DNA from: Macrostomum lignano | Lineage: Eukaryota | Length of the DNA: 64,000 nt | Direction: 5' to 3' | Assembly (NCBI GenBank): GCA_002269645.1 | Contig: NIVC01001852.1 | Location: 62,001 to 126,000 of the forward strand | Shown here: piece after piece, positions 5,831-61,777 of the stretch | How positions within the stretch are numbered: position 1 is the stretch's first letter | Layout of the letters: every line of letters begins with the position of its first letter | Notes under the pieces: model-generated | Seen by the model: the letters and a program-made list of their open reading frames with translations, nothing else | The model's database searches: none | Told to the model about the DNA's origin: nothing | Translations under genes and position numbers: made by a program

Positions 5831-6059
5831 TAAATGAAATTGTACCACTTATATAATTATAATTCAACATATATAAAGCAGTTATGACATGATTAATTTG
5901 TCAGGCAAGTCAGTATCAGTCTCAATTAAAGTTGACAATATAGTTACACAATCAAAATCAAGTCTAGTGCTATATGCTTCCACACTACATTTTCAATATT
6001 GTGACACAATTAAATTCAGTGTCAAAATTCAGCCAGGATATAGACAATAAATAAAAAGC

Positions 6060-6265
6060 CTATGTGATGTAATCTATTTCAGAATGTGATTTCAACCAGT
6101 CAGTTTTTTTCTAGCATTCTTACAATGCATTTCAATTCAAAAAGTTTGCTTGACCTTTGCAAAAAGCATGTTTTTCAAATATTTAATGCCTTTAGCATCA
6201 AGCAATTTCTTAGCCAAGACATATGTACTATCAAGGGAAAATTTCTAATTGAACAGTGCAAGTCT
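6060..6265. repeat. Dispersed repeat, inverted copy at about 25530-25755
   Basis: ttcagaat...gacctttgcaaaaagcatgtttt...gcaatttcttagcca is present as the reverse complement near 25.6 kb. Confidence 0.75.
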
Positions 6266-6316
6266 CATGAAAATAAGTTAAGCTGTTTTTTCTCTAATCT
6301 ATCACATATATATAGA

Positions 6317-9146
<2,830 letters not shown>

Positions 9147-12123
9147 CAAGCTGTTGAAACCCGCGGATTTTGAACCCGGGGAACTCCATTTCCCGGAATT
9201 ATTTTTGCATGTATTCTAAAATCTGAGGTAAAACTCAAACAAAAACTTGTTCCCTTGTTAATAGTTAGGATAGAGTTAAACATAAAATAGTGTAAATTCA
9301 TTTAAAATTAGGATTTGAGGCAAACATTGATATTGTTGGCTGGGGTGCTGCGCAGAATATCAGGCAAACTCTGGCCTCTACGTACCTCTGCCTCTCCCTA
9401 TGTCCTTTGCATCCTTTGAAACTTCCATCTTCTTTTCTGTTTCCTATCTTCTCTCTCGTCTCTTCTCTCTCTCCCCTCTTATCTCTTCTTTCTTCTCTCC
9501 TCTCTCGTCTCTTCTCTCATCTCTTCCCTCTCCCCTCTATTCTTTTCTCTCTCTTCTCCTCTCTTCGCTCTGGTCTCTGGTCTCTCATATCTCCTTTCTC
9601 CTGTTTTATCTTTTCTCATTCTCTCTACTCTCTACTCTCTCTTCCCTCTGCTCTCTGCTCTCTCTTCCCTCACCTCTCTTCTCACTCCTTACTCTACCCT
9701 CTCTCAACTGCACTTTCCTTATCTCTACTCTCTCCTTTTTCCTCTCTTCTCTCAACTCTTTCCTCTCCTCTGTCCACTCTCTCCTCTCATCTCTCTGCTC
9801 TCTCCTATCCTATCTCTCTTCTCTCTCTTCTCTCCCCTCTTTCCTCTCCTCCCTCGTCCTTTTCACCAATTTCCCCTGTCCTCTCGATTCTCTCCCTTCC
9901 CCTCCTCTCTCCTCACTCACTTCTCATCTCTCCCTTGTCTCCACCTCTCATCCCTTATTTCTTATCTCTCCTCTTTTCCCTCTACTCTCCCATCTCTCGT
10001 CTGTTCACTCTCATATTTCTGCTCTCTCATCTCCCCTCTCTTATCTGTCATCTTTACTCTCATATGTTCTCTCACCTCTCTCCCTTTGTACTCCTCTCTT
10101 TCCCCTTTTTGACTCAGGAGGACTCGATCCTTTCTTCTTTCTTCTCGTCTCTTCTCTTCTCTCTTCTATACTCTCTCTCTCTCTTGTCTTCTCTCTTCTC
10201 TCTCACTCTCCTCTCTCCTCTCTTATATCGTCTGTTCACTCTCATCTTTGCTCTCTCATTCCCCTCTCTCTTCTGTCATCTCTACTCTCCTCTCTACTGT
10301 GTACTATTCTCTTTCCCCTCTTCTGACTCCTCTCTTTCCTTACTCCTCTCTTCTCTTCCCTCTTCTATACTCTCTCCCCTCTATTCTCTTTTCTCGTCTC
10401 TCCGCACTCTGCTCTCTCTTCCTTCATCTCTCATCTCTACTCTACTCTCTCATATTTCCTTTCATCTCACTCATCTCTACAATCTCATCTCTTTCCTCTC
10501 TCCTCCTCTTCCCTTTACTCTATCATCTCTCCTTTGTCCTCTCTTCTTTCTCAACTCTCTCTCTCATCTCTATCTTCTCTCTTCTCACTCGTCTCTCCCC
10601 CTCTTATCTCCTCCCCTCTATCCTTTCTAATCCCCCCTCTCGATACTCTCATTTCCTCTTTGTTCTCTCATCTCACTCTTCTCTACTCTCCTCTCTCATC
10701 GATCCTCTGTCTCATCTCTCCCCTCTTCTCTCTCCATCTTCTCACCTCTACTATTTCCTCTCGCTTCTCTCTCCCCTCCTCTCGCTTCTTCTTCCCATAT
10801 TCTCTGCTCTCTCCTCAACCTCCTCGTACGTCTCTCCTGTTATCTTCTATCTTTTCTTTTATCCCCTCTCGCCCCTCCTCCCTTTCTAATAGTCTATTCC
10901 TTTTCCTTTTCACTCTCATCTGGCCCGTAGCTGCCGATCTGCCGATCCCTGCTTCGAAAGCCAGTTTGTGGGACGTAGTACTATCATGGTTGTTATCATT
11001 TCTCATGCTTTAATCACGTCATCTTTCTGGTCAATTAGCAGCCCTGAGAGAAATTTGTATATCTCCAGCTCCACCACCACAGTCTAGTGCAGCAGTCTAA
11101 CAACCATGGAAATACGCATTTCTTAGGAGGCCATTTAAATTTTAAAGTACCTTATGCGAATCTTAATGTTAAAATTTTCATGGTGTAACTAATTTAGTAG
11201 GATTGCATTGTAATCAGTTATTCATTAATTTTTCGCTATTTTTACAAACCATCCCGCATCGCCTTGATTTGCCTGTTTGCCATCTACTGTTAAACTGCTG
11301 CAGACTTGTGTCTATACAGAGGACAGTGGTTTGAATCTCTCGCTGAAACTGTCTGTCCTCTCCACGCCTCTCCACTCTCGGGGTGCAGAGAAGGCTATTA
11401 AAAAGTTATTCCAAAACACTGTACATTCGCTATTTACATTGAGCCCTATCGCCTGACCCTTCGTCTGGCTCTGGGGCAATGAGTGAGTGAGTGGCACAAA
11501 CAACAGAAAAAGCAGACAAACTTCACATGCTTACAGTTTCTTTTTCGGTTGAGTTACAGAGTTGAAACTTTACATTTAGACAGAGAATGGGTCAATGAAG
11601 AATTGTGTCAAGTTTGAAGTCAATCGCTTTACGTAAAGCAAACTTATGACAGCCCAAAGTTAGTCATTTAAAAACCTATTTGCACCCTTTGCCCAGATCG
11701 GGAAAGAGAGGCAGGCGGGCGGAGGTTGGGGTGGTTGCTACGCTGAAAAAACAGCCTTACTTTAAAAGTGCACAGCACCGCTCAGGATTAACTTTGAGAC
11801 TCGAAATTTTACATGATTGTGCCAAAATAGTTTAAGATTATCTGTGTCAAATTTGAAGAGAATCGGTAGAAGTGGAGCGGCGCTATGGAGGATTAAGTGA
11901 AAAAATCGCGCATTTTGAGCAGTTTTTTGTACTTTTAGGTAGGAAGACTTGAGTCTAGGAGATTAAAAGGTAGCCTAAGACATTCTCCGTAGTAAGTTTA
12001 GGGTGGGTGTAAAGTTTGGTGTAATTTGGTTGAGCGGTTTGGGAGTCCATAGCGATCAAAATTGTCCACACACAGACAGACAGACAGACAGACAGACAGA
12101 GTTTTGATTTTTATAGGTAGAGA
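9147..12123 (-). mobile_element. Non-autonomous Helitron-like element, tandem copy 2
   Basis: Exact head-to-tail junction ...tttttataggtagaga|caagctgttgaaacccgcgg; same modules as copy 1. Confidence 0.7.
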
Positions 12124-12822
12124 CAAGCTGTTGAAACCCGCGGATTTTGAACCCGGGAAACTCCAATCCCCGGAACTATTTTTGCATGTATTGAGATTAA
12201 ACTCAAACAAAAACATTTATTAGTTGGGATAGAGTTAAACATGAAATAGAGTACATTCGTGTAAAATTAGGATTTGAGGCAAACATTGATATTGTTGGCT
12301 GGGGTGCTGCGCAGAATGTCAGGAAAACTCTGGCCTCTACCTCTGCCTCTCCCTATGTCCCTTGCATTCTTTGAAACTTCCATCTTCTCTTCTGTTTCCT
12401 CACTTCTCTCTTGTCTCTTGTCTCTTCTCTCTCCTCTCATCTCTTCTTTCTTCTCTCCTCTGTCCCCTCTTCTTTTGTCTCTTCCCTCTATTCGTTTCTC
12501 TCTCCTTTCCTCTCTTCTCTCTCGTCTCTGCTCTCCCATCTCTCCTTTCTCCTCTTTTATCTCTTCTCATTTCTCTCTGCTCTCTCCTCTCTCTTCTCTC
12601 TCTGCTCTCTACTCTCTCTTCCCTCTCCTCTCCTCTCTTCTCACTCATTACATTACCCTCTCTCAACACTTCCCTCATCTCTCCTCTCTCCTTTCTCTTC
12701 TCTTCTCTCCACTCTCTCCTCTCATCTCTTCTATCGTTTCTTTCCTCACCTCTCTTCTCTCTCATCTTTGCTCTATTATCTTTCCTTTCTCTTCTTTTAT
12801 CTTTTCTCTCTTATCTCTTCTC

Positions 12823-12888
<66 letters not shown>

Positions 12889-13570
12889 TCTCTGCTCTCT
12901 CCTGTCTCATCTCTCTTCTCCTCTCTAATCTCTTCCCTCTTTCCTCTCCTCTCTCGTCCTTCCCCTGTTTCCCCTGTCTTCTCGATTCTCTCCCTCCCCT
13001 CCTCTCTCCTCACTCACTTCTCTCTCCCTTTGTCTCACCTCTCATCTCTCATCTCTTATTTCTTATCTCTCCTCTTTTCTCTGTCATCTGTCATCTTTAC
13101 TCTCTTATACTCGTATGCTCTCTCACCTCTCTCCTTTGTACTATTCTCTTTCCCCTCTTTTGACTCCTCTCTTTCCTTTCTCCTTTCTCCTTTCTTCTCT
13201 TCTCTCCCCTCTTCTATACTCTCTCCCTCTCTTGTCTTCTCTCTTTTCTCTCCACTCTCCTCTCTCCTCTCATATATCGTCTGTTCACTCTCATCTGTCT
13301 CACCCCCTCTCTCTTCTGTCATCTCTACTCTCCTCTCTCCTGTGTACTCTTCTCTTTCCCCTCTTCTGACTCCCCTCTTTCCTTACTCCTCTCTTCTCTT
13401 CCCTCTTCTTTACTCTCTCCACTCTATTCTCTTCTCTCGTCTCTCGTCTCTCTGCACTCAGCTCTCTCCTCCTTCATCTCTCATCTCTCCTTTTCTCTCT
13501 TATCTCTACAATCTAATTTCTTTCCTCTCTCCTCCTCTTCCCTTTACTCTATCTCTCCTTTCTCCTCTTT

Positions 13571-13649
<79 letters not shown>

Positions 13650-15176
13650 TTTATCTCCTCTCTTCTCACTCCTCTCTCCCCCTCTTATCTCCTCTCCTCG
13701 ATCCTTTCTAATCTCTCCTCTCGATCCTCTCCTCTCTACTCTCCTCTCTCATCGATCCTGTCTTATCTCTCCCCTCTTCTCTCTCCCTCTTCTCACCTCT
13801 ACTCTTTCCTCTCTCTTCTCTCTCCCCTCCTCTCGCTTTTTCCTCGCATATTCTCTGCTCTCTCCTCACCCCCTCGTATCTCTTGTTATCTTCTATTATT
13901 TCTCTTATTCCCCTCTCGCCCCTCCTTCTCTTTCTAATAGTCTATTCCTTCTCCTTTCCACTCTCATCTGGCCCGCAGCCATGAGCTTGATTCTTTATCT
14001 GGCCTTTGAGGTAAAAATCTGCCGATCCCTGCTTCGAAAGCCAGTTTTTCGGACGTAGTTGTTATCATTTCTCATGCTTTAATCACGTCATCTTTCTGGC
14101 CAATTAGTAGCCCTGAGAGGAATCTCCAGCTCCACGAACACCACCACAGTCTGCAGCAGTCTAACAACCAAGGACACACGCATTTCTTAGGAGATATTTA
14201 AATTTTAAAGTACCTTATGCGAAACTTAATGTTAAAAGTTTCATGGTGTAACTAATTTAGTAGGATTGCATCGTAATCAGTTATTTATTAATTTTTCGCT
14301 ATTTTTACAAATACGCTCGTACAAACCATCCCGCTGCTCGCATCGCCTTGGTTTGCCGCTGCTGCAGACTGTCCATACAGAGGACAGTGGTTTGAATCTC
14401 TCACTAAACTGTCAAGGCTAAACGTAGCCTCTCCACGCGCGGGGTGCAGAGAAGGCTATTAAAAAGTTATTCCAAAACACTGTACATTTGCTATGTACAT
14501 TCAGCCCTATCGCCTGACCCTTCGTCTGGGCTGGGGGAATGAGTGAGTGAGTGGCACAAACAACAGAAAAAGCAGACAAACTTCACATGCTTACAGTTTC
14601 TTTTTCGGTTGAGTTACAGAGTTGAAACTTTACATTTAGATAGAGAATGAGTCAATGAAGAATTGTGTCAAGTTTGAAGTCAATCGCTTTACGTGGAGCA
14701 AACTTATGGCAGCTGAAAGTTAGTCAATTTTGAAACCCTTTTACACATCTGGGCCCAGATCGGTATCGGGAAAGAGAGGTTGGCGGGCGGAGGTTGGGGT
14801 GGTTGCTACGCTGAAAAAAATAGCCTAACTTTAAAAGTGCACAGCACCGCTCAGGATTAACTTTGAGATTTGAAATTTTACACGATTGTGTCAAAATAGT
14901 TGAAAATTGTCTGTGTCAAATTTGAAGAGAATCGGTAGAAGTGGAGCGGCGCTATGGAGGATTTAGTGAAAAAATCGCGCATTTTAAGCAGTTTTTTGTA
15001 CTTTTAGGTAGGAAGACTTGAGTCTAGGAAATTTAAAGGTAGCCTAAGACATTCTCCGTAGTAAGTTTAGGGTGGGTGTAAAGTTTGGTGTAATTTGGTT
15101 GAGCGGTTTGGGAGTCCATAGCGATCAAAATTGTCCACACACACACACACAGAGTTTTGATTTTTATATGTAGAGA
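12124..15176 (-). mobile_element. Non-autonomous Helitron-like element, tandem copy 3
   Basis: Same junction at 12123/12124; ends ...tttttatatgtagaga|tatc. Confidence 0.7.
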
Positions 15177-38503: not shown

Positions 38504-38506
38504 ATG
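38504..38506 (+). CDS. SELENOM-like gene, first coding exon (ATG only)
   Basis: ttcaATG|GTGAGT donor; 86-bp intron 38507-38592 ending atttatacgcAG. Confidence 0.7.
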
Positions 38507-38592
38507 GTGAGTTTCATTATTCTGTTTCGAAATACATTCATTTTTCTAATATGAGTACACAAGATTTACCTATTCGATTTATTTATACGCAG

Positions 38593-39105
38593 GCAACTCT
38601 CAGGACCAGGAGCGTCGCTGCCGTCGCTGCGATCTGCTGCATTCTCTACCTGGCCTCCGTGATCACCGCTGCGTCCAATGAAGGCGACTCGCAATCGGCC
38701 CAGAAGGCCAAACGGCCCAAGTACAATGAAACTCGATTCAAGGAGGTTATCATCAGGGGCAATGTAGAATGGAATCGCACCAGAAAGGACGACGACATGC
38801 GGCCGTCCTATGCTATGCTGCACGCCCACCTGCAGTGCGGCTCCAACCTGACTAACATTAAAGAATTTGTCAAGTCGATCCTGCAGGAAGAATACTGGCC
38901 AAACGTCTACTGGAAGAACGGGCAGGACGCCAAGCCAACGCTTTACATATTCACCCAGGAGAAGAAGTACGCGCACCGGATTGATGTGCTGGACAAGTCT
39001 TCCGACGAGATCAAGGATCTGCTGAGAGGCTACGGATTCAACGGCACTCCCGATCCGCCGGAAGAAGAGGCAGAGGAGGACAAGAATACGAAGACCGAGC
39101 TTTGA
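38593..39105 (+). CDS. Sep15/SelM-family ER thioredoxin-like protein (Cys form, HxxC)
   Basis: Signal peptide ATLRTRSVAAVAAICCILYLASVITAA; WNR...YAMLHAHLQCGSNLTNIKEFVK...PTLYIF...RIDVLDKSSDEIKDLLRGYGF aligns to SELENOM (WNR...ARVETCGGUQLNRLKEVKAFV...PELVLL...RIPLSEMTREEINALVQELGF). C-terminal KTEL. No in-frame TGA. Confidence 0.75.
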   Translation, partial: ATLRTRSVAAVAAICCILYLASVITAASNEGDSQSAQKAKRPKYNETRFKEVIIRGNVEWNRTRKDDDMRPSYAMLHAHLQCGSNLTNIKEFVKSILQEEYWPNVYWKNGQDAKPTLYIFTQEKKYAHRIDVLDKSSDEIKDLLRGYGFNGTPDPPEEEAEEDKNTKTEL

Positions 39106-40690
39106 TTTTGATTCTATTAACTGCGTTGAACACATTACTCGTAGTAACTTACTTTGTGCTTTTACATGTAACAAAAAACCAAACTTAATTTTAACTAAAT
39201 AGGATAAGTACATGTAACTTAATTATTGGGGCGAGAAAATCGGTAATTAATACTACGTACTTTCAATTTATATTGTAAATGAATCAGCCATTTCTGTTGG
39301 TTTTGGAAACTGATTAAAATGACCGACTACATTTTCTGTTTTGAATCTCGGTTGCACGCGTATTTATTGTACGACCTTCTTGATAAACAAAATGCTTGCA
39401 TTGGTTAATGCCCACTTGAGGCGAGGACTGTTTGTGAATTGTCAGCTGAATATTTTGTTAAAGATACACTTTGCTGAAGTGCAGTGCTAAAGGTCTTCGA
39501 GAGATTCTGTGACTCAATTTCTTACAGGTGTACGTGCGTACTTTTGAAACTTCTCTTCTAATGCGTGCACACAATCTTTTAATTATTTGTCAACATCTGC
39601 CAGCAAGTGTATAGCGAAATATGTTAAATAGCTTCCGAAAAGTTTAATTTGTTTGATTTAATTTCACGCATACAGGCCTTCTTGTTCAGGTGCAGGTACA
39701 GCACATTTTGTATGTGTACGAGTACATGTAGTCAAATTTTTATGTACTGCATATCGGGGAATAAATGTAATTGACACACTATAGCTAGCTAGATTTTAAC
39801 AACAATGAGAAATCCAGATACAGTTGGATAAGTTTTGAGCAAAAGTCTATAGTAATATTAGTCATCTCTTCAGATTGATAATTCCCAAATAAATGGTTAC
39901 ATGTGTGTGTGCATGTCCATGCACGTCATGCTCGACAGCGGCTAAGATTATTCAAAACAAATGCTTCTGTGCAATCGCAGTTTAATGTAGCTATGCATAA
40001 AAATAAAGCCACACAAGGCTGCGTAAGTTACCCAAGCGAAATCGAATACAAGTGTGGCTTAAAATGCATGTTGCGTTTGATGAAATGAAAAAAGATTATC
40101 TGCAATATAATAGCTCTTAAATTGTTTGCACATTAACGGTTTTTTTTAAATTAAAACAAAAGAAAATATTATTTGTTTCACAATACCTTCTGATTGTATT
40201 TCAAAAGTTCAAAATTAAGTTATATTTTTTTATTTTTAGTCTTTTGTTTCAGCCGAAATTTAAGTTGTACATAAGTGGGGCGATTTTTTGGTCACTCATG
40301 TTTTCTTTTTTCTTTCTTGTTGCGTGATGCGGACTTTTGCGCGCATGCCCATGCAGTGAGAAGTCGTGTCGTTGTTCGGTTAGTCGTGAATGATGAAGAC
40401 AATAAAATTTTGTTCTTTTTGATGTAGTGTTTTTGTATTGTAATATCATACTCGTATAATCAGAAATTTGTGAATTTTGGGTAGGCCTATATGATTTATA
40501 TTTATTAAATAAAACTTTACAATTTTATCAAATCATTAATTTTGTCACCTGTAACCATACTTCATAGCCAGGTCCCGTGATTTTTATGGGGTATTTAGGG
40601 TATTTTAAATTTAAGCTCCATTTCTCTGTAACTTTGACTAAAATCCATATAATCAATAATCCATGTAGAATTTATTGTGGCAGAAGCTTT

Positions 40691-42941: not shown

Positions 42942-43922
42942 AATAATAATAATAATAATAATAATAGTTACGCCCCATGCTAGCCACGGGAGTGGCCAAG
43001 AGGGGGGAGCGTCAAATCGCGCGTTTCAGAGCTAGGTCTCTAATGTGCTTCACACTGGCCGTCTGGCTGGGTGCTCGCACATCTTCAAAAAGGCGGTCGA
43101 CATAGTGGGCTGATCGTCCCTGGCCACACCTGCATGGTCCCTGCGGGGTCCACAGCAGGACGTCCTGCAGTGGCTCTGGGCAGCAGGCTTTGGCCCAGAT
43201 GACATGTCTGGCAAGCCGCAGGCGCCGCTGACTCAGCAGGGCAGAAGGCCGCGTCAGGCCTGTGTGCTTGTACAGGGACTCAGTTGTCTCGCTGCCAGGG
43301 CCGCAGCGGGCGCCGAAAGCGGCGCAGACTAGGGCCGCATGTGATGCGTTGAGCTGCGCCTCAAGCGCCCCGGTCAGCGTCCAGGTCTCAGCATTGTACA
43401 GCAGGGTGGTCTCAACAACCGCCTGGAACAGCTGGGACCTGGTGCCGTCGGACAGGGCCTCGGAGAGCAGCACCACCCACACAGATCGGAAGGCAGCCCA
43501 GGCCTTGCTGCGCCATCTCATTAGGTCGTCACCGACATCTGGCACCAGTCCGCCAAGGTAGACAAATGAAGGCACTTCAGGAGCGCCGTCCCGGGGCCAT
43601 CGCCGTCTCGAAGTCGAATCTTGGCGGGTAGATCATGCGGCACCATCAGCACCTTGGTCTTCCTGGCGTTGATGACGAGACCGACCCTCGCCGCCACCAC
43701 AGTCAGGCTGTCCAGCAGCCGTTGGGCGCCTTCGGCCATGGAAGACAACAGGGCAAGGTCATCTGCGTAGCCAAGAACAGACAGTTTCTTCTCCGGGTGC
43801 CGTCTACTGGTGCGCCTTTGCAGCAGAAAGCCATCCTCTGATGTCGGCAGGCCGGTCCTGAGCACCCAGTCCATCACCAGCACAAAGAGAAAGGGCGCCA
43901 GAGTGTCACCCTGTAGCACTCC
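42942..43922 (-). mobile_element. 5'-truncated RTE-type non-LTR retrotransposon (RT C-terminal part, one frameshift)
   Basis: GVLQGDTLAPFLF...LGYADDLAL...GLVINARKTK; frameshift near 43575; FVYLG...LLYNAETWTL...RRLRLARHV; stop at 43012, short 3' UTR and (TAT)n tail. Confidence 0.92.
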
Positions 43923-47515: not shown

Positions 47516-47593
47516 GCGATTCGACAAGGGCGAAAGTCGGCTTCGACTCGATAGAGAGAGAGAAAGAGCAAAGGATTGTGAGGCTGACGCAGC

Positions 47594-48019
47594 ATGCCAG
47601 CTCTAGTGGATATCAATGTCACAATGGCCCTGACGCCAGTGTCACACTCGCCAATGGACGCCGAACAATGGGGCCGTCAGAGATTCGCTATATTTTTAGC
47701 CGCTTCAATTGGTTTGTACGCCGGTTTAGGATGCCTATTATTAGCCTGTATAGGTATCGTTTGGCGCCGTCGGAGGCGCTTAAATCGGCGCCGATTACGC
47801 GCCGGCGCCTCGTCGGCGGCTGTGTCCTCGTCGTCGGCCGCTATGGGCAACGGTGGTCACAATTTTGGCACCAATCACGACTGGCTGCTGGCGAGAGGCA
47901 CCGGCTGCAGCTCTTCGTCAGCTGGCGGGACTCCGTCGATGGATGACTGCAGCGTTCGGTTGGTCAGGCAGCTGCCTTGTTCGGGAAAAGCCGCCATCAT
48001 CTACGAGGCTGTGCTAGAT
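47594..48019 (+). CDS. BMP/TGF-beta type II receptor-like pseudokinase, exon 1 (TM + kinase start)
   Basis: Hydrophobic FAIFLAASIGLYAGLGCLLLACIGIVW followed by RRRRR; LVRQLPCSGKAAIIYEAVLD|GTGAGA, phase 0. Confidence 0.75.
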
Positions 48020-48024
48020 GTGAG

Positions 48025-49010
48025 ACTCCATAATCTTTTATTTAGATTCTATAATCCCTTATTTAGATTATCTAATCCTCATTTTGGATTCTTTAATCCT
48101 CATTTTAGATTCTCTAACCCCCATTTTGAATTTTCTGATTCCCATTTTAGATTCTCTAATCGCCATATTGGATTTTCTGATCCCCATTTTAGATTCTTTG
48201 ATCCCCATTTTAAATTCTCTAATCGCCATTTTATAGATTGTCTAATCTCCATCTAGCATTCTTTAATCCTCATTTTAAATTCTCTAATCCCCATTGTAGA
48301 TTCTCTGATCCCCATTTTAGATTCTCTGATCCCCATTTTAGATTCTCTAATCCCCATTTTAGATTCTCTAATCGCCATTTTATAGATTGTCTAATCTCCA
48401 TCTAGCATTCTTTAATCCTCATTTTAAATTCTCTAATCCCCATTGTAGATTCTCTGATCCCCATTTTAGATTCTCTGATCCCCATTTTAGATTCTCTAAT
48501 CGCCATTTTGGATTTTCTGATCCCCATTTTAGATTCTCTAATCGCCATTTTAGATTCTCTGATCCCCATTTTAGATTCTCTAATCGCCATTTTAGATTCT
48601 CTGATCCCCATTTTAGATTCTCTGATCCCCATTTTAGATTCTCTAATCGCCATTTTAAATCCTCTAATCCAGATTATAGATTTTAAATCTCCATTTAAGA
48701 TTCTCTAATCCTCATTTTATAGATTCTCTAATCCTCATTTTATAGATTCTCTAATCCTCATTTTATAGATTCTCTAATCCTCATTTTATAGATTCTCTAA
48801 TCCTCATTTTATAGATTCTCTAATCCTCATTTTATAGATTCTCTAATCCTCATTTTATAGATTGTCTAATCTCCATCTAGCATTCTTTAATCCTCATTTT
48901 AAATTCTCTAATCCCCATTGTAGATTCTCTGATCCCCATTTTAGATTCTCTAATCCTCATTGTAGATAGTAGAATCCCCATTGTAGATTCTCTGATCCCC
49001 ATTTGAGATT
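48025..49010. repeat. About 21-24-bp intronic minisatellite
   Basis: agattctctaatccccatttt variants starting immediately after the donor site. Confidence 0.95.
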
Positions 49011-49092
49011 TTATAACCCCCTTGTCCACCCTCAATAATCAGTCTCATAAGCTACTGAATTCTGATTCGACCCATTCATACTTTAGTCTCAG

Positions 49093-49373
49093 AACGGCGA
49101 TCCCTTATCACCCTTCCCATCATGCCTCAATCAGTCCTCAGCCGGTGACAGCAGCGGCAGTCGATCGTGTGTTGCCAAACTGTTTTATCCGGAATCGTCG
49201 AGCTCTATAGCCCAGTACCGGTCTGAGCTGTCTTCTTATCGCAAGCTGGAACGAGCCAACGCTGTGACATTCTTCCCCAGGCTGTTTGGTTGCACAATGT
49301 ACACCGGACAGAGGCCATGTCTGCTGCTGGAACTGGCCACCGGGGGCTGCTTATCCGACCAGTTGGCCGATAG
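49093..49373 (+). CDS. Receptor pseudokinase exon 2
   Basis: tttagtctcAG|NGD...SCVAKLFYPE...QYRSEL...PRLFG...CLLLELATGGCLSDQLAD-AG|GTGAAT. An alternative in-frame acceptor lies at 49135. Absent from the ORF track. Confidence 0.8.
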
Positions 49374-50230
49374 GTGAATTCTTATCTATCACTTAGTTCT
49401 CGCTGTACTTTTAGATATTGATAAAACCCCAGGAGTATTGTATCTGAAAGCACTTTAACGAGTTTCTTGTGTCATAGTACTCTTGGCGCGACATGTTCAA
49501 ATTTGAAATGGCATAACCATTTTATTTGCCTTCCAATTATTATCTAGATTTAGATTAGCTAGATCTATATTGTCTATATTTATATAAGCATTAGCAACGG
49601 CGTGAGAGATTTTCTATCGGATATACTTAGCTTTTATTCTGTAAAACTGTTACGTACAATTTGCGTATATGCAGCGTAGGTCTACTTATTGGCTATGAGT
49701 TTATAAGCCTGCTAATCATAATTATTAATACGCTCGTATACAGCATTGCTTTGCAGAGATGCCTACCACAGTTCAGTTAATTAGCATTATTACCTTCATT
49801 CGATTTTATATGCACTACGCACTGACGATTAGTGTTAAACCTAGACAAAGCTGGGTAGAAGAGGTGGGAACGTATTTCGTGCATCAGTCTTGAAGGGGTA
49901 CCCAGATTTATGTAGGATACCTAGATTAATAAATACAGATAAACAGCCGTGTACTCAGATTAATACCTAAATAAATACTCAGTCATATAGCCATATAAAT
50001 ACTAAATAAGTACCTAGCCGTATACCCAGATAAGTACCCAGTCATATACCCAGATGTCCAAAAAAGTGGCCATCCTTTTTAGGTGAACAGCAGGGTATTT
50101 ATTTGGGTACATAATTAACTTTGAGTGACACTAAAAATCCCAATGAATATATCCAGCTGCTTAAGTGAACTCAAGCCCCATCTGTTACTCACTTTCAACT
50201 GATAAAATTCAACCAATCAAGGTGCTACAG

Positions 50231-50572
50231 CTGGTCAGATTTCTGCCGTTTAGCCTGCGCCCTCTGCGCCGCCGTGGCCCAGTTGCACAGCATCGGTCGG
50301 GCTCATTGCCGATTAGAGACTGCCAGCTTTGTGCTCAGAGGGCCGCTGGCACCACTGCTAGTGGGCCTGTCCGGCTTCTGGTCCACCGTTGGTAGTCACC
50401 TGCGCTACGCTGCACCAGAGCTGTTAGCAGCTTCCCAGCAGACTCCGCAGCATCATAATCAGAAACGGAATGGCAAATTGCATCAGCAGGGTCAGGGCTC
50501 GTTCAATCTGGAACAGCTGATGGCGGCTGATTCTTATTCGCTAGGCCTCATACTGTGGGAGGTCGCTACCCG
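50231..50572 (+). CDS. Receptor pseudokinase exon 3
   Basis: gctacAG|(S)WSDFCRLACALCAAVAQLHS...AHCRLETAS...LVGLS...VGSHLRYAAPELL...AADSYSLGLILWEVAT-CG|GTAAGT, resembling BMPR2 WVSSCRLAHS...SHRDLNSRN...DFGLS...VGTIRYMAPEVL...VDMYALGLIYWEI. Confidence 0.88.
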
Positions 50573-50619
50573 GTAAGTCCAATCACAGTGTAGTCTTCTA
50601 TGGGATACTTTGATATGGT

Positions 50620-50860
50620 TATGACGTCATTGATACTTACTGACGTCATCGACCCTCATTAATACTTACTCACATCATCAACTCTCATTGATGCTTTCTG
50701 GCTTCATCGACCCATATTGATACTTAATGACGTCATCAACCCATATGGATAACCTAATGACGTCATCGACCCGCATTTATACCTAATAGCGTTATTGACC
50801 ACCTGATATTTGCTGACGTCATCGACCCGCATTTATACTTAATGACGTCATTGACCCTCA
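50620..50860. repeat. About 29-bp degenerate intronic repeat with six perfect TGACGTCA palindromes
   Basis: TGACGTCA at 50622, 50641, 50728, 50758, 50814 and 50843. Confidence 0.8.
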
Positions 50861-51173
50861 TTTCTCTGATCGATAATTACTGAGACGTTATCAATCAATC
50901 GATACTCGTTGTTGATACCTAAAGACCTCGTTTATACCTGTCATTGATGACAGTAATAATCAAGCAGAGCTTATAAGTGACTATTCAATACAACTTTTCT
51001 GAATGAATTCAGAAAATGATTTTATTAATCAAAGTGATAATAAATAAACTTTAATATTCCCTCAATCATTTGAAACGAAAGCATTGACACTTGTAGCTGG
51101 CTTATTTACTGCCATAATTAACTACATTCATATTTAGAATTTAGTTTACACTACCTTAACTCGCATTGCGCAG

Positions 51174-51519
51174 GTGCTCTGCATTTTACGATAAATCGGA
51201 ATCGCCGCCGTCCTATGCTCCCGTATTCTCTGACCGGCTAAAAGTTCGCAGTTCGTCTGCCTCATCGGCCGATTCGTCTGCTCAACGAACTCTAACAGCT
51301 TCTCAGGCTAGAGCAGCTCTGCTCAGGCCCGGCCTAGACTATTTGTCTACTGCTAATCCTCTGTCGGCCTCTCTGACACTGCCGGTGCAGAATCATCCGG
51401 CGCTGCCATTTATTGCTGAAACTCTGGCCGAGTGTTGGACACCGGCTAGCGTTGGTAAACGGCTTAGCCCGGCCAGTCTGCACGCCAGGTTCTCGTCTTT
51501 GGCGCCAAATTTTGTTTGA
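51174..51519 (+). CDS. Receptor pseudokinase exon 4
   Basis: ttgcgcAG|G gives RCSAFYDKSESPPSYAPVF (BMPR2: RCTDLFPGESVPEYQMAF)...LAECW...RLSP; stop at 51517-51519. Four exons sum to 1395 nt, in frame. Confidence 0.85.
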
Positions 51520-52324: not shown

Positions 52325-52519
52325 AAGTCCTGTCTGTCTCTGTCTGTCTGATTGTCTGTCTTAGTACCTGTCTGTCTGTCTGTCTGTCTGTCTCTGTCTG
52401 TCTGATTGTCTGTCTTAGTACCTGTCTGTTTGTCTGTCTGTCTGTCTGATTGTCTGTCTTAGTACCTGTCTGTCTGTCTGTCTGTCTGTCTGCTTTAGTA
52501 CCTGCCTGACTGTCTGTCC

Positions 52520-52551
<32 letters not shown>

Positions 52552-52700
52552 GCTTTAGTACCTGCCTGACTGTCTGTCCGTCTGTCTGTCTGTCTGTCTG
52601 TGTGTGTGTGTCTGACTGTCTGTCTTTCTAGTGTCTGCCTGTCTGTCTCTTCCTATCTGCCTGTCTCCCTTTGAGCCCACCAGCTGTCTGTCTGTCTTAC
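52325..52700. repeat. (CTGT)n compound microsatellite
   Basis: Direct reading of the sequence. Confidence 0.95.
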
Positions 52701-54039
52701 CGCTACTGTCTCTATCTACTGTCCCCTTCATTATTCATTCGCTTGCCTAAAGTGCAACGCCCCCTAACTTGTTGATCACTTACAGCAGTGTTTAATTCGC
52801 AATCGAATTCAGCTCTATTATCTTTCATTCTGAGTGTAAACTTGTTTTTTTTATTTGAGTACTTTTTTGAGCACCAATCTTTTTAAGTCACCTCCACAGG
52901 GAATCGCGAAGTGAATATGCACTCAATAATTCATTGCTGAATCTCCGTAACTTCGTGCAGTGACTTCGTGCTAAATATTTTTCAGTACAAACTTGACCCA
53001 GTTTGCTACTCACTTGGCAGTTATTGCTGGGAGGCAATCTCTGTTGTTATAACTGTTAAATGCTTGTAACTATGGAGATTATATTTCTTCAATTCGTTGT
53101 GTACACACGCATCCTCTTCATACGAGCTTTGTTGACGGCCGATGAATTTTCCCAATGATTTTTTATGGCTTACTATTTATTATTAGTATTAATTATTAGT
53201 CTGGTGTACAGTCGTGAACAGATTTTGTACACAGTACGTGGATGTATTTTTCTAGATAAAAGATCTAAGAAAAATTGTTTTGTGGCGTTTATACTGCAAA
53301 TGAAAGTGCAATAAGTACTTTATATACTCTTTAGCTTATATTTGTCTTGCCCGTTTTTAACTGTTTTGTCCGCTTATAAATATGCATTATGTACTTATTA
53401 ATACAGATACTCAATAGAGTTAACTGCCACGCATATTTGAGCATGTTCGTCTGCGTCTCTCCTATTCACTGCTGCACTTTTAACTTTGATAATACGTTAA
53501 TAATGGTCATTGTTGTTCTAATATATTTATATTTGTTTTTTAAGTCATTGTCAGATTTTCTATTAGCATATTAAGTATATACCCAACACAATTCTTTTGG
53601 TACTGTTGAAGTAAAAAAATAAAATTGCAAATATGCCAATCCAATAGTTTATCTTTCTCTTTTTTATTGTTGTAGAAACTAATTTCAGTTTTTTATCTCA
53701 ACTTTTCTCACTTATTGTCAGTAATTTCTTTTCTATTTTTAACTTTTGTGTTTCTTTTTTTTGCGTTTTTCCACTTACCTTTGGCTCTACTGTCTATTAG
53801 TGCAATTTGCGACAGAATCTAGATTATTAACTCGATAGTTGGAGTACTGACTGATAATGTTACCTTTGCAGCAGGTCAATACAAATACAGATGGACTTAA
53901 TATATAGTGGCGTTATGTTAAGCAATAAAAGCTTTGCTTGTTTCATTTTATTCTACACATTTTAGTGGCTATAGCGCTTATTAGTATCCTTATTCTGACA
54001 TTTCCATTACAATCCGTGTTTTATATCCGAATATGACCC

Positions 54040-54800
54040 CCATTTGCATGTAGATCCTAACATGACCCCCATTTCCATGTAGATCATACCATGACCCCCG
54101 ATTTACATTTAGATTCCGCAATGGCCCACCAATTTACATTTAGATCCCACAATGGCCCACCAATTTACATTTAGATCCCACTATGGCCCACCAATTGACA
54201 TTTAGATTCCGCAATGGCCCACCAATTTACATTTAGATCCCACTATGGCCCACCAATTTACATTTAGATTCCACAATGGCCCACCAATTTACATTTAGAT
54301 TCCACAATGGCCCACCAATTTACATTTAGATTCCACAATGGCCCACCAATTTACATTTAGATTCCACAATGGCCCACCAATTTACATTTAGATTCCACAA
54401 TGGCCCACCAATTTACATTTAGATTCCACAATGGCCCACCAATTTACATTTAGATTCCACAATGGCCCACCAATTTACATTTCGATTCCACTATGGCCCA
54501 CCAATTTACATTTAGATTCCACAATGGCCCACCAATTTACATTTAGATTCCACAATGGCCCACCAATTTACATTTAGATTCCACAATGGCCCACCAATTT
54601 ACATTTCGATTCCACAATGGCCCACCAATTTACATTTAGATTCCACAATGGCCCACCAATTTACATTTAGATTCCGCAATGGCCCATCAATTTACATTTA
54701 GATTCCACAATGGCCCACCAATTTACATTTAGATTCCACAATGGCCCACCAATTTACATTTAGATTCCACAATGGCCCACCAATTTACATTTAGATCCCT
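54040..54800. repeat. 31-bp minisatellite
   Basis: Unit tccacaatggcccaccaatttacatttagat. Confidence 0.95.
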
Positions 54801-58090: not shown

Positions 58091-58903
58091 ATGCACAAGC
58101 TAGTACACCTGCCAATCAATCAATTAAACGAGCACATCACCTGTCGCCTATGCCAGGGCTACCTGATTGACGCTACTACCATAGTAGAATGCTTGCACGC
58201 CTTCTGTCGCTCGTGCCTATTGACCCATCTGACTCAGCAGCACGCCTGTCCAGTATGCGATATCCAGCTGCACAAAGGCGATCCATACCGCGCCATCCGC
58301 CTAGACCGGGCGCTGCAATCGCTCGTATACAAACTCGTGCCCGGCCTATTCAAATCTGAGATGACTCGTCGCCGTCAGTTCTACGTTGAGCATCCTTCGG
58401 CTGGGTCTGACCGAGCTTTGAGTCCGGAGAAACGCGGCGATTTATTAGCGCCAGAGACTGCTAGCCTAGTCCAGGACGACGAACGGGTGTCCTTGTCGCT
58501 TGAACTGGCCGACACTAAGCGAATCCGTAATGGCCGACTGCTCAGAACTGATTGCGTTGATCAGACTCGGGCTTGCTACCTGCTAGCGCCCGCCTGTCTT
58601 ACTGTGCAACAGTTGCAAAAATTTCTCCGATTGAAACTGGACCTACGACCGACTCAGTCTATTGCAATATTCTACACTGAGGACTGTTTGCACGCCGACT
58701 TCTCTATTATGGATATTGCCTACGTGTACGCTTGGCGTAGGAAAGGACCTTTGAGACTGTTTTACACTGTGCTTGAGTCGGCTGCCGCTAGGGCATCTGC
58801 TGGAGCTGCTGCTGCGGCTGCTGCTACTGGCTGTCCCAGCTCAACTTTTGGGTTGAGCAGCTGTTCCGCTAGCGACAGCGGGGCTGATGCCAATTCCAGC
58901 TGA
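58091..58903 (+). CDS. BMI1: BMI1/PCGF4-like Polycomb group RING finger protein (RING + RAWUL), intronless CDS
   Basis: LNEHITCRLCQGYLIDATTIVECLHAFCRSC...CPVC...DRALQSLVYKLVPGLFKSEMTRRRQFY closely resembles BMI1/PCGF2; C-terminal RAWUL YLLAPACLTVQQLQKFL...SIMDIAYVYAWRRKGPLRLFY. Acceptor tttcAG 13 nt upstream of the ATG. Confidence 0.9.
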   Translation: MHKLVHLPINQLNEHITCRLCQGYLIDATTIVECLHAFCRSCLLTHLTQQHACPVCDIQLHKGDPYRAIRLDRALQSLVYKLVPGLFKSEMTRRRQFYVEHPSAGSDRALSPEKRGDLLAPETASLVQDDERVSLSLELADTKRIRNGRLLRTDCVDQTRACYLLAPACLTVQQLQKFLRLKLDLRPTQSIAIFYTEDCLHADFSIMDIAYVYAWRRKGPLRLFYTVLESAAARASAGAAAAAAATGCPSSTFGLSSCSASDSGADANSS

Positions 58904-60650: not shown

Positions 60651-61777
60651 CTGTGTATCGGTTTCCCTGCCAAGATTGTGCACGCTGTGCCAAGACGCCA
60701 GTTTTATGTTATGCTAAAAAGAATTGGAAAAGCATCATCAATGCGGTTTCATATGAAAATTTGCAATTTTAGGCTTCACAGCCTAAAGCTTTAGCATTAA
60801 TGTTCCAAATACTTTGTTGCAGTGCACTGTTGCCAAGCGCATGCTCATTTTGTTGTTATGCAAACTTTTTTGAATGGCTTTGAATTGCTAATTTTGCTAA
60901 AATGGAGTGCTAAAATAACTTTTTATTACAAGGTTTCTGATCTGCGCCTTTTGATTCAAGCAGTTCGCAGTGGCTATGTGAATTTTTATGCTGTTAGTAG
61001 TTGGCGCGCGTTTTTACTGCTTTTTATTTTTATAATCTTTACTGCTCACCACCTGTATAGCTTTACAGGATGTAAGTTTTTCTCTGCAACGCAGCGACTG
61101 TTGAATTTACAAAATAAAATTTGCGTAATAAAAAATTAGGGTATTAACTATTATGTATATATAATATACTAAGTAACTTTTTTAAAGCGCATTTAGAAAT
61201 ATATATTTCGTTTGTTTTGGTTTTGTTGTATTTTTTTGCAGTATAATGTTATTATATTCATATTTTATTATAAATGGCCTGTCACTTGGAGAAATTTGCA
61301 AAATAACAAAGGAAAGAGGATTTACATTACATTAGGCGCATCTTTTAGTACACATAGGGAAGTTATTGTTTTTTGGAGTATTTGAGACTTAGGTTCAGAC
61401 GACTGGCCTGAATAATCAGGGAATTTGCTTTTAGATACAAGGGTTTATAAAGCCAGTTAAAGCAATAAAAATCTGCTAATCAATGACAGTCTATTTTATA
61501 AGAACCTTTGCACACGGGTAGCATGACGACAGCACCGGAACTGAAAACCGTGCAAGAATCACATTATTATGAATTCTAGATGAGCCAGTGCGAAGAAAAG
61601 TTCCTGTTTAAACTACTTTCTTTTGGGCATATGAAGTGCAAATAACTGCCAGATTTTGCAATGGGAAGACGTCAGATTTTTATGTTTTCGGCCGCAGGCA
61701 AATACTCAAAACCAATTAAAACTGAGATTTCGCTTTGACTATGCAATAGAATTCCCAGTGCTTTTAGGCCAACCTGT

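Follow-up and report, generated by a model that had tools for sequence, protein, structure and literature searches.

The window analyzed here is a 64,000-nt stretch of Macrostomum lignano DNA (assembly GCA_002269645.1, contig NIVC01001852.1, positions 62,001 to 126,000). It contains the gene Mlig028532.g1, which encodes a 453-aa protein (PAA63356.1) whose kinase-like domain resembles that of the type II receptors of the TGF-beta/BMP family, and in which neither a Cys-rich ectodomain nor the key catalytic residues could be found. In databases the product is named only as a hypothetical protein or a "protein kinase domain-containing protein". Our own translation of the four-exon model was identical to the deposited protein (P0003), with the same ATG at 47594 and the same stop at 51519. 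The coding sequence (CDS) of 1362 nt was free of stops and all junctions were GT-AG, in agreement with an earlier prediction made from the DNA letters alone (the sequence-only reading), which had proposed a frame-preserving gene of four exons without stops. The donors GTGAG, GTGAA and GTAAG agree with the species-enriched donor motif (PMC8629364), and at the end of exon 1 CTAGAT is followed by gtgaga.

The locus was found in three copies in M. lignano, a hidden polyploid species (PMC10468722): the window's own (L003) and two homeologous loci (L001 and L002), all with intact open reading frames (ORFs) and canonical splice sites. L003 was identical to the window in both segments compared, its first 2 kb (at window 37594) and the first 600 nt of the gene (at window 47594). 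Exon 1 was 99.8-100% identical in both other homeologs, and the exon 2 acceptor aatcag (49135) was kept in 3/3 copies. An alternative exon 2 acceptor at 49087, which keeps the frame and gives a protein of 469 aa, was rejected. Its AG is absent in L001, and the homeolog changes in the 48 nt between the two acceptors would all be nonsynonymous. Therefore, 49135 was preferred.

Table 1. Features of Mlig028532.g1 and of the surrounding window (window coordinates; TM, transmembrane; AF2, AlphaFold2)
Feature	Position	Strand	Content or basis
In-frame TGA	47585..47587	+	read directly; three codons upstream of the ATG (9 nt)
Exon 1	47594..48019	+	start codon, 30-aa Cys-free N-terminus with NVT sequon, TM helix, poly-Arg, juxtamembrane Ser/Ala-rich region, degenerate Gly loop
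TM helix (FAIFLAASIGLYAGLGCLLLACIGIVW, residues 31-57)	47684..47764	+	hydropathy, AF2
Poly-Arg stop-transfer stretch RRRRRLNRRRLR	47765..47800	+	directly after the TM helix; topology by the positive-inside rule
Degenerate Gly-rich loop CSGKAA (from C129)	47978..47995	+	alignment A1; GxGxxG in canonical receptors
Exon 2	49135..49373	+	beta3 Lys (CVAK, K157), alphaC Glu (E173), hinge
Exon 3	50222..50572	+	alphaE, catalytic loop (degenerate), segment without DFG, shortened activation loop, APE, insert rich in Gln/His, first part of the DSYSLGLILWEVATR signature
Catalytic loop HCRLETAS (H250-C-R-L-E-T-A-S257) replacing HRDLxxxN	50304..50327	+	alignment; Asp and Asn lost
DFG-equivalent segment LLVGLSGF, without Asp	50355..50378	+	alignment, AF2
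22-residue Gln/His-rich insertion after APE	50436..50501	+	alignment; lineage-specific; predicted disordered
Exon 4	51174..51519	+	RC...YAPVF, Ser-rich insertion, AECW, subdomain XI Arg (KRLSP), stop codon
21-bp tandem repeat, ~46 copies	48041-49025		intron 1; fills most of the intron
29-bp tandem repeat, ~8 copies	50627-50862		intron 3; CRE (cAMP response element)-like palindrome TGACGTCA in most units
561-aa ORF, predicted multi-pass membrane protein	949-2634	minus	putative
CT-rich low-complexity satellite	~6000-14000		GC skew ~-0.6, AT skew ~-0.5; long artefactual 'SLSLSL' ORFs
Upstream neighbor gene	38504-39105	+	annotated 171-aa protein, weak Sep15/SelM redox-domain match, C-terminal KTEL
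Reverse-transcriptase (RVT_1) fragment, retroelement remnant	43521-43919	minus	upstream intergenic region
(CTGT)n microsatellite, ~80 copies	52330-52648		between Mlig028532.g1 and the next gene
31-bp tandem repeat, ~25 copies	54025-54798		between Mlig028532.g1 and the next gene
Downstream neighbor, Polycomb-group RING finger-like protein	58091-58903	+	RING and RAWUL domains

As in type II receptors, a single TM helix was observed. Its maximum 19-mer Kyte-Doolittle hydropathy was 2.19, and AF2 predicted a helix at residues 23-70 with a predicted local distance difference test score (pLDDT) of 88-96 (about 90). The helix begins at residue 31, which confirms that only ~30 residues precede it, and these residues contain zero Cys and one NVT sequon (N8). 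According to the positive-inside rule, the positively charged flank of a TM helix is located on the cytoplasmic side. Because the poly-Arg stretch directly follows the helix, the kinase-like domain would reside in the cytoplasm and the N-terminus outside the cell.

The Cys-rich ligand-binding ectodomain of type II receptors, recognizable as an Activin_recp domain with the Cys box CC-x-CN, could not be identified. Pfam gave no PF01064 (Activin_recp) match in the 453-aa protein, and in the 8.4 kb between the end of the next upstream gene on this strand (39105) and the ATG no Cys-box-like stop-free segment was present on the + strand. A contiguous upstream extension of exon 1 is ruled out by the in-frame TGA at 47585, which the sequence-only reading had pointed out. 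A permissive tblastn search with 12 receptor ectodomains against the upstream region yielded only low-complexity minus-strand matches and one weak + strand match. The latter (39703-39771, E=0.19) was rejected as an ectodomain, as it lies in the AT-rich 3' flank of the neighboring gene and ends in a stop. Spliced leader (SL) trans-splicing at 47592 or 47606 was rejected as a source of additional coding sequence, since with the 35-nt leader (PMC8629364) the SL ATG is out of frame and no coding sequence is added; SL-derived sequence was absent from the 64-kb window. A longer isoform was found neither in a word-indexed search of 5.8 billion protein sequences nor in an exhaustive HMMER search of 1.84 billion cluster-representative proteins. 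The Mlig_3_7 gene models are StringTie/TACO assemblies of RNA-seq data with boundaries from trans-splicing and poly(A) reads (PMC5730564), and all three homeologous models begin at the same ATG. The proposed lack of an ectodomain was thus upheld by the domain search, the upstream ORF and tblastn checks, the RNA-seq-guided annotation and all three homeologs.

The alternative that bears most directly on these data is an incomplete 5' end of the model, in which upstream exons encode a signal sequence and a Cys-rich ectodomain, and the protein is a kinase-dead receptor of ordinary architecture, like EmTRL of Echinococcus multilocularis. Flatworm TGF-beta receptor models are often 5'-short, as were 3/4 of the Echinococcus models (PMC10073696). 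A candidate acceptor (ctctag) is located at 47606/47607, and in the MAFFT alignment LVDINVT lies opposite LCNxNVT, with which the Cys boxes of canonical receptors end; this hints at a truncation right at the end of the ectodomain. However, the latter match spans three residues only; if real, it would mark the point at which an ancestral ectodomain was cut off. Moreover, the interval from 39105 to the ATG contains no ectodomain-like + strand ORF and is in part taken up by the reverse-transcriptase fragment, the three RNA-seq-annotated homeologs share the ATG, and the databases contain no longer protein. An incomplete 5' end is considered rather improbable.

In the 453-aa protein, Pfam identified a kinase domain only, with a score barely over the threshold (24.4 bits, cut-off 23.1). 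Motifs were assigned from a MAFFT alignment (A1) of the protein with 13 type II receptors. The beta3 Lys (K157, CVAK), the alphaC Glu (E173), APE (286-288) and the subdomain IX Asp (D325) are retained, as had been claimed, and so is the subdomain XI Arg (R435). The replacement of HRDLxxxN by HCRLETAS was found again in the alignment (H250-S257), and the Gly loop, which had been described as degenerate, reads C129-S-G-K-A-A and has lost two of three glycines. The DFG motif had been proposed to be replaced by LVG. Here, the loss of the DFG Asp was confirmed, but LVG is only one possible register, and both the MAFFT alignment and the AF2 strands (beta8 = 266-268) favor G269-L-S. The activation loop is ~21 residues shorter in the alignment than in BMPR2-type receptors. 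Besides the Gln/His-rich insertion after APE, in the region of which pLDDT is <50 (residues 296-314), a second lineage-specific insertion, which is Ser-rich, follows YAPVF in exon 4.

Pseudokinases are defined as kinase folds without one or more of three residues (VAIK Lys, HRD Asp, DFG Asp), and this protein lacks both of the Asp residues. With three catalytic motifs lost in the alignment, the earlier classification of the protein as a pseudokinase stands. The Lys is kept, but the remaining requirements for catalysis by type II receptors are absent (HCR, Asn to Ser, no DFG Asp, CSGKAA), and the protein is predicted to be unable to phosphorylate. Some nucleotide-binding pseudokinases likewise retain the pair of beta3 Lys and alphaC Glu together with APE, and for this reason it was considered whether non-canonical residues might support either atypical kinase activity or a switch operated by ATP binding. 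However, the catalytic loop has lost both its base and the Mg-binding Asn, the DFG Asp and two Gly-loop glycines are gone as well, and the only acidic residue of the catalytic loop that might compensate, E254, is at a non-equivalent position. Either possibility is very unlikely.

The affinity of the protein was analyzed by sequence and structure comparisons. When it was compared with all PDB sequences using phmmer, the seven best distinct matches were TGFBR2, ACVR2A, ACVR2B and BMPR2 (36-21 bits; E-values of 2.4e-8 for TGFBR2 and 4e-6 for ACVR2A). The best kinase outside the receptor family was CaMKIV with 20 bits, and type I receptors scored ~14 bits. With the N-lobe and the C-lobe as separate queries, TGFBR2 was the top match for each, and the C-lobe matched exclusively TGF-beta-family receptors. 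The AF2 model (pLDDT 61.7; predicted template modeling score, pTM, 0.57) was built on a type II alignment, which may bias fold matches; with this model and the same possible bias, the top five Foldseek matches were ACVR2A, TGFBR2 and ACVR2B, and type I receptors came next. No GS box (SGSGSG motif) was found in the protein, which is a type II-like trait. A Ser-rich CSSSSAGG ~20 residues before the Gly loop is of low complexity and unmatched by type I structures.

In the HMMER search of the 1.84 billion representatives, solely M. lignano proteins scored below 1e-10, with no flatworm sequence from outside M. lignano below this value and no orthologue closer than generic type II receptors. The next matches (7.8e-10 and weaker) were a mixture of generic TKL kinases and BMPR2/wishful-thinking-type receptors, the latter from arthropods, cnidarians and other groups. 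The WExxxRC signature of the receptor family was present in ~38/64 of the best database matches, the top ones being BMPR2/wit, and the identity to these closest receptors was only ~25-32%.

A special kinship with the receptor-like protein P0076 of Trichobilharzia, which carries an insertion at the same position together with HRN and DIG, found no support in BLASTP. A canonical type II receptor of M. lignano was sought with P0006, itself an arthropod-like sequence, and only other phyla were represented among the best 120 matches. The type II-like protein P0031 of the jellyfish Sanderia malayensis (EukProt) has an intact Cys-box ectodomain, its HRD is changed to HRN and its DFG to GFD, and it may be an independent cnidarian receptor pseudokinase.

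Selection on the gene family was studied using the three homeologs. Their 1362-nt CDSs are 99.0-99.6% identical with 0 indels, beside introns with 7-498 gap columns and up to 15% substitutions. The pairwise ratio of nonsynonymous to synonymous divergence (dN/dS) was 0.09-0.23; neutral ratios, which would have spoken against a functional gene, were not seen. On the three-copy tree, 6 nonsynonymous and 11 synonymous events were counted, with a neutral expectation of 74% nonsynonymous (binomial P=0.0009). The nonsynonymous deficit and the lack of CDS indels next to indel-rich introns argue for purifying selection on the Mlig028532.g1 family. Since the deposited models come from RNA-seq-guided annotation, the gene is probably expressed.

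These data also bear on the view that the gene is a decaying relic, that is, a truncated duplicate that is becoming a pseudogene and is at most incidentally transcribed. The loss of the ectodomain and of the catalytic motifs and the marginal Pfam score would fit a relic, expression data for the gene were not found in a literature and supplement search, and the homeologs are so young that their intactness is weak evidence. On the other hand, the three ORFs and their splice sites are intact, the nonsynonymous deficit is significant, and so deep a divergence from all receptors implies that the reading frame has long stayed open. There is little chance that the gene is such a relic. An additional sequence of the same gene family from an older M. 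lignano assembly (P0005, UniProt A0A1I8FCK7; 186 aa, 76% identical) looks frameshifted; it probably stems from faulty assembly or annotation of the earlier genome rather than from a disrupted fourth copy.

Purifying selection shows that there is a function, not which one, and the protein could be a functional membrane pseudokinase that has left the TGF-beta/BMP pathway and taken on a new scaffold or allosteric role in some unrelated process. The low identity to receptors, the lineage-specific insertions, the shortened activation loop and the lack of an orthologue below 1e-10 outside M. lignano are in line with this, as is the lack of an ectodomain, without which the protein has no entry into ligand-assembled complexes. 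However, its best-conserved part is the receptor-family C-lobe (DSYSLGLILWEVATRC, YxPxF, ECW, RLS). As this lobe matches only TGF-beta-family receptors in the PDB, it suggests that a family-specific surface was retained. A role in an unrelated process is unlikely, though less so than the alternatives above.

Around the gene, the C-terminal KTEL of the upstream neighbor looks like an endoplasmic reticulum-retention signal. The 7.8 kb around the RVT_1 fragment are 98.3% identical to L001, which is above the similarity of the introns of Mlig028532.g1. The length of intron 1 varies among the homeologs (1115, 617 and 985 bp). In intron 3, 6 matches to the repeat-unit core TGACGTCATCGACCC (<=2 mismatches) were counted vs 0.01 expected, and the palindrome was kept in 5/6; this repeat may represent a satellite, or else a group of bZIP-type binding sites. 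The Polycomb-group RING finger-like gene has a syntenic counterpart at two or more of the homeologous loci (L001 and L002), and the gene table of L003, which reaches window position 61519, has no gene at 58091-58903.

Taken together, the data slightly favor the interpretation that Mlig028532.g1 encodes a lineage-restricted, highly diverged type II receptor paralogue which has lost its ectodomain and its catalytic residues and acts non-catalytically on TGF-beta/BMP receptors or their clients. The part of this statement that concerns identity and architecture is held with good confidence; that the protein modulates TGF-beta/BMP signaling is a tentative proposal. The protein would act by binding rather than by catalysis. 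Anchored by a single helix, with its N-terminus out, the kinase fold in the cytoplasm and the receptor-family C-lobe retained, it could pair with type I or type II receptors at their cytoplasmic domains, or with the cytoplasmic clients of these receptors, in a ligand-independent way. Binding might damp or bias Smad signaling, or the protein might serve as an allosteric partner or scaffold. The receptor-family C-lobe is the best-conserved region, and binding to receptors or their clients is the most economical hypothesis. The BMP/activin inhibitor proposed by the sequence-only reading is one plausible version of it, and the effect could be that of an inhibitor or of an enhancer. Damping or biasing of Smad signaling is only slightly more likely than a scaffold or allosteric role or one outside the pathway.

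Several points weigh against this interpretation. Similarity to type II receptors was found in the PDB, Foldseek and database top matches and in WExxxRC, but in a crude neighbor-joining tree the protein sat on a very long branch and fell outside the type II clade, and in a contrast of two hidden Markov models (HMMs) the type II HMM and the other-TKL HMM scored about equally (83.4 vs 83.0 bits). Because the branch is very long, neither approach places the protein within the type II clade, and with equal HMM scores type II membership rests on the ranking of best hits, not on phylogeny. The gene's 5' end rests on annotation and sequence, the gene IDs of Mlig028532.g1 and its two sister genes (Mlig003883.g1 and Mlig016454.g1) were not found in a literature and supplement search, and no Logan RNA-seq-derived copy was present in the 5.8 billion-sequence collection. 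The homeologs are very recent (dS 0.01-0.03), which leaves few events in the selection test, and gene conversion could contribute. In addition, kinase-dead type II receptors classically inhibit in a dominant-negative manner by joining the ligand-assembled complex through their ectodomain. Without an ectodomain there is no recruitment by ligand, and this route is closed. Ectodomain and catalytic competence, two defining features of type II receptors, both failed when checked. Therefore, the protein is best treated as an apparent offshoot of the TGF-beta receptor family with type II receptors as its nearest relatives, but not as a full member.

Pseudokinases derived from TGF-beta receptors are rare and have received little study, and a version without an ectodomain would show that the type II cytoplasmic domain can be selected for a non-catalytic, ligand-independent job. 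More specifically, the protein could set the gain of Smad signaling from inside the cell, as a ligand-blind counterpart of BAMBI that occupies the cytoplasmic domains of type I receptors. This is doubtful, but if true, it would be a setter of Smad gain in a flatworm used for the study of regeneration and stem cells. RNA interference and transgenesis in M. lignano make the question tractable and could reveal ligand-free mutual recognition of receptor kinase domains. The wider impact is uncertain, as the gene is seemingly confined to one lineage.

Compared with known systems, the protein shares with the type II receptors (BMPR2/wit, ACVR2/punt, TGFBR2) a single-pass architecture with a predicted cytoplasmic kinase fold, the absence of a GS box and the best sequence and fold matches, as well as the C-lobe signature D-x-Y-S-L-G-L-x-L-W-E-x-x-x-R-C, Y-x-P-x-F, E-C-W and R-L-(S/T). 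It differs from them in lacking the Cys-rich three-finger ectodomain, the signal peptide, the long C-terminal tail, a proper Gly loop, the Asp and Asn of the catalytic loop and the DFG Asp; its activation loop is shortened, and it carries two lineage-specific insertions. BAMBI combines a type I-like ectodomain with the absence of a kinase domain. Both are membrane-bound, non-catalytic members of the TGF-beta receptor world that could modulate signaling, but there is no sequence relationship, and the receptor-like ectodomain and short non-kinase tail of BAMBI are mirrored in M. lignano by the opposite architecture, a kinase-like domain without an ectodomain.

EmTRL (EmuJ_000906600) of E. multilocularis, a type II receptor-derived pseudokinase with no known function (PMC10073696), is the closest published case found. 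Both proteins are type II-related dead kinases of flatworms, but EmTRL retains an extracellular Cys box and 7 cysteines, whereas the M. lignano protein has none. Orthology of the two is not supported because no sequence of another flatworm scored below 1e-10. An animal relative of TGF-beta type II receptors that lacks both ectodomain and catalysis was not found described in the literature; the gene itself is already annotated. Outside animals, Arabidopsis ARLPK1/2 are receptor-like pseudokinases without extracellular domains (PMC4848489). They likewise represent a receptor-kinase relative that was reduced to a membrane-associated dead kinase, in their case a negative regulator of signaling, but they belong to the receptor-like kinase (RLK)/Pelle family of another kingdom, and the resemblance is an analogy only.

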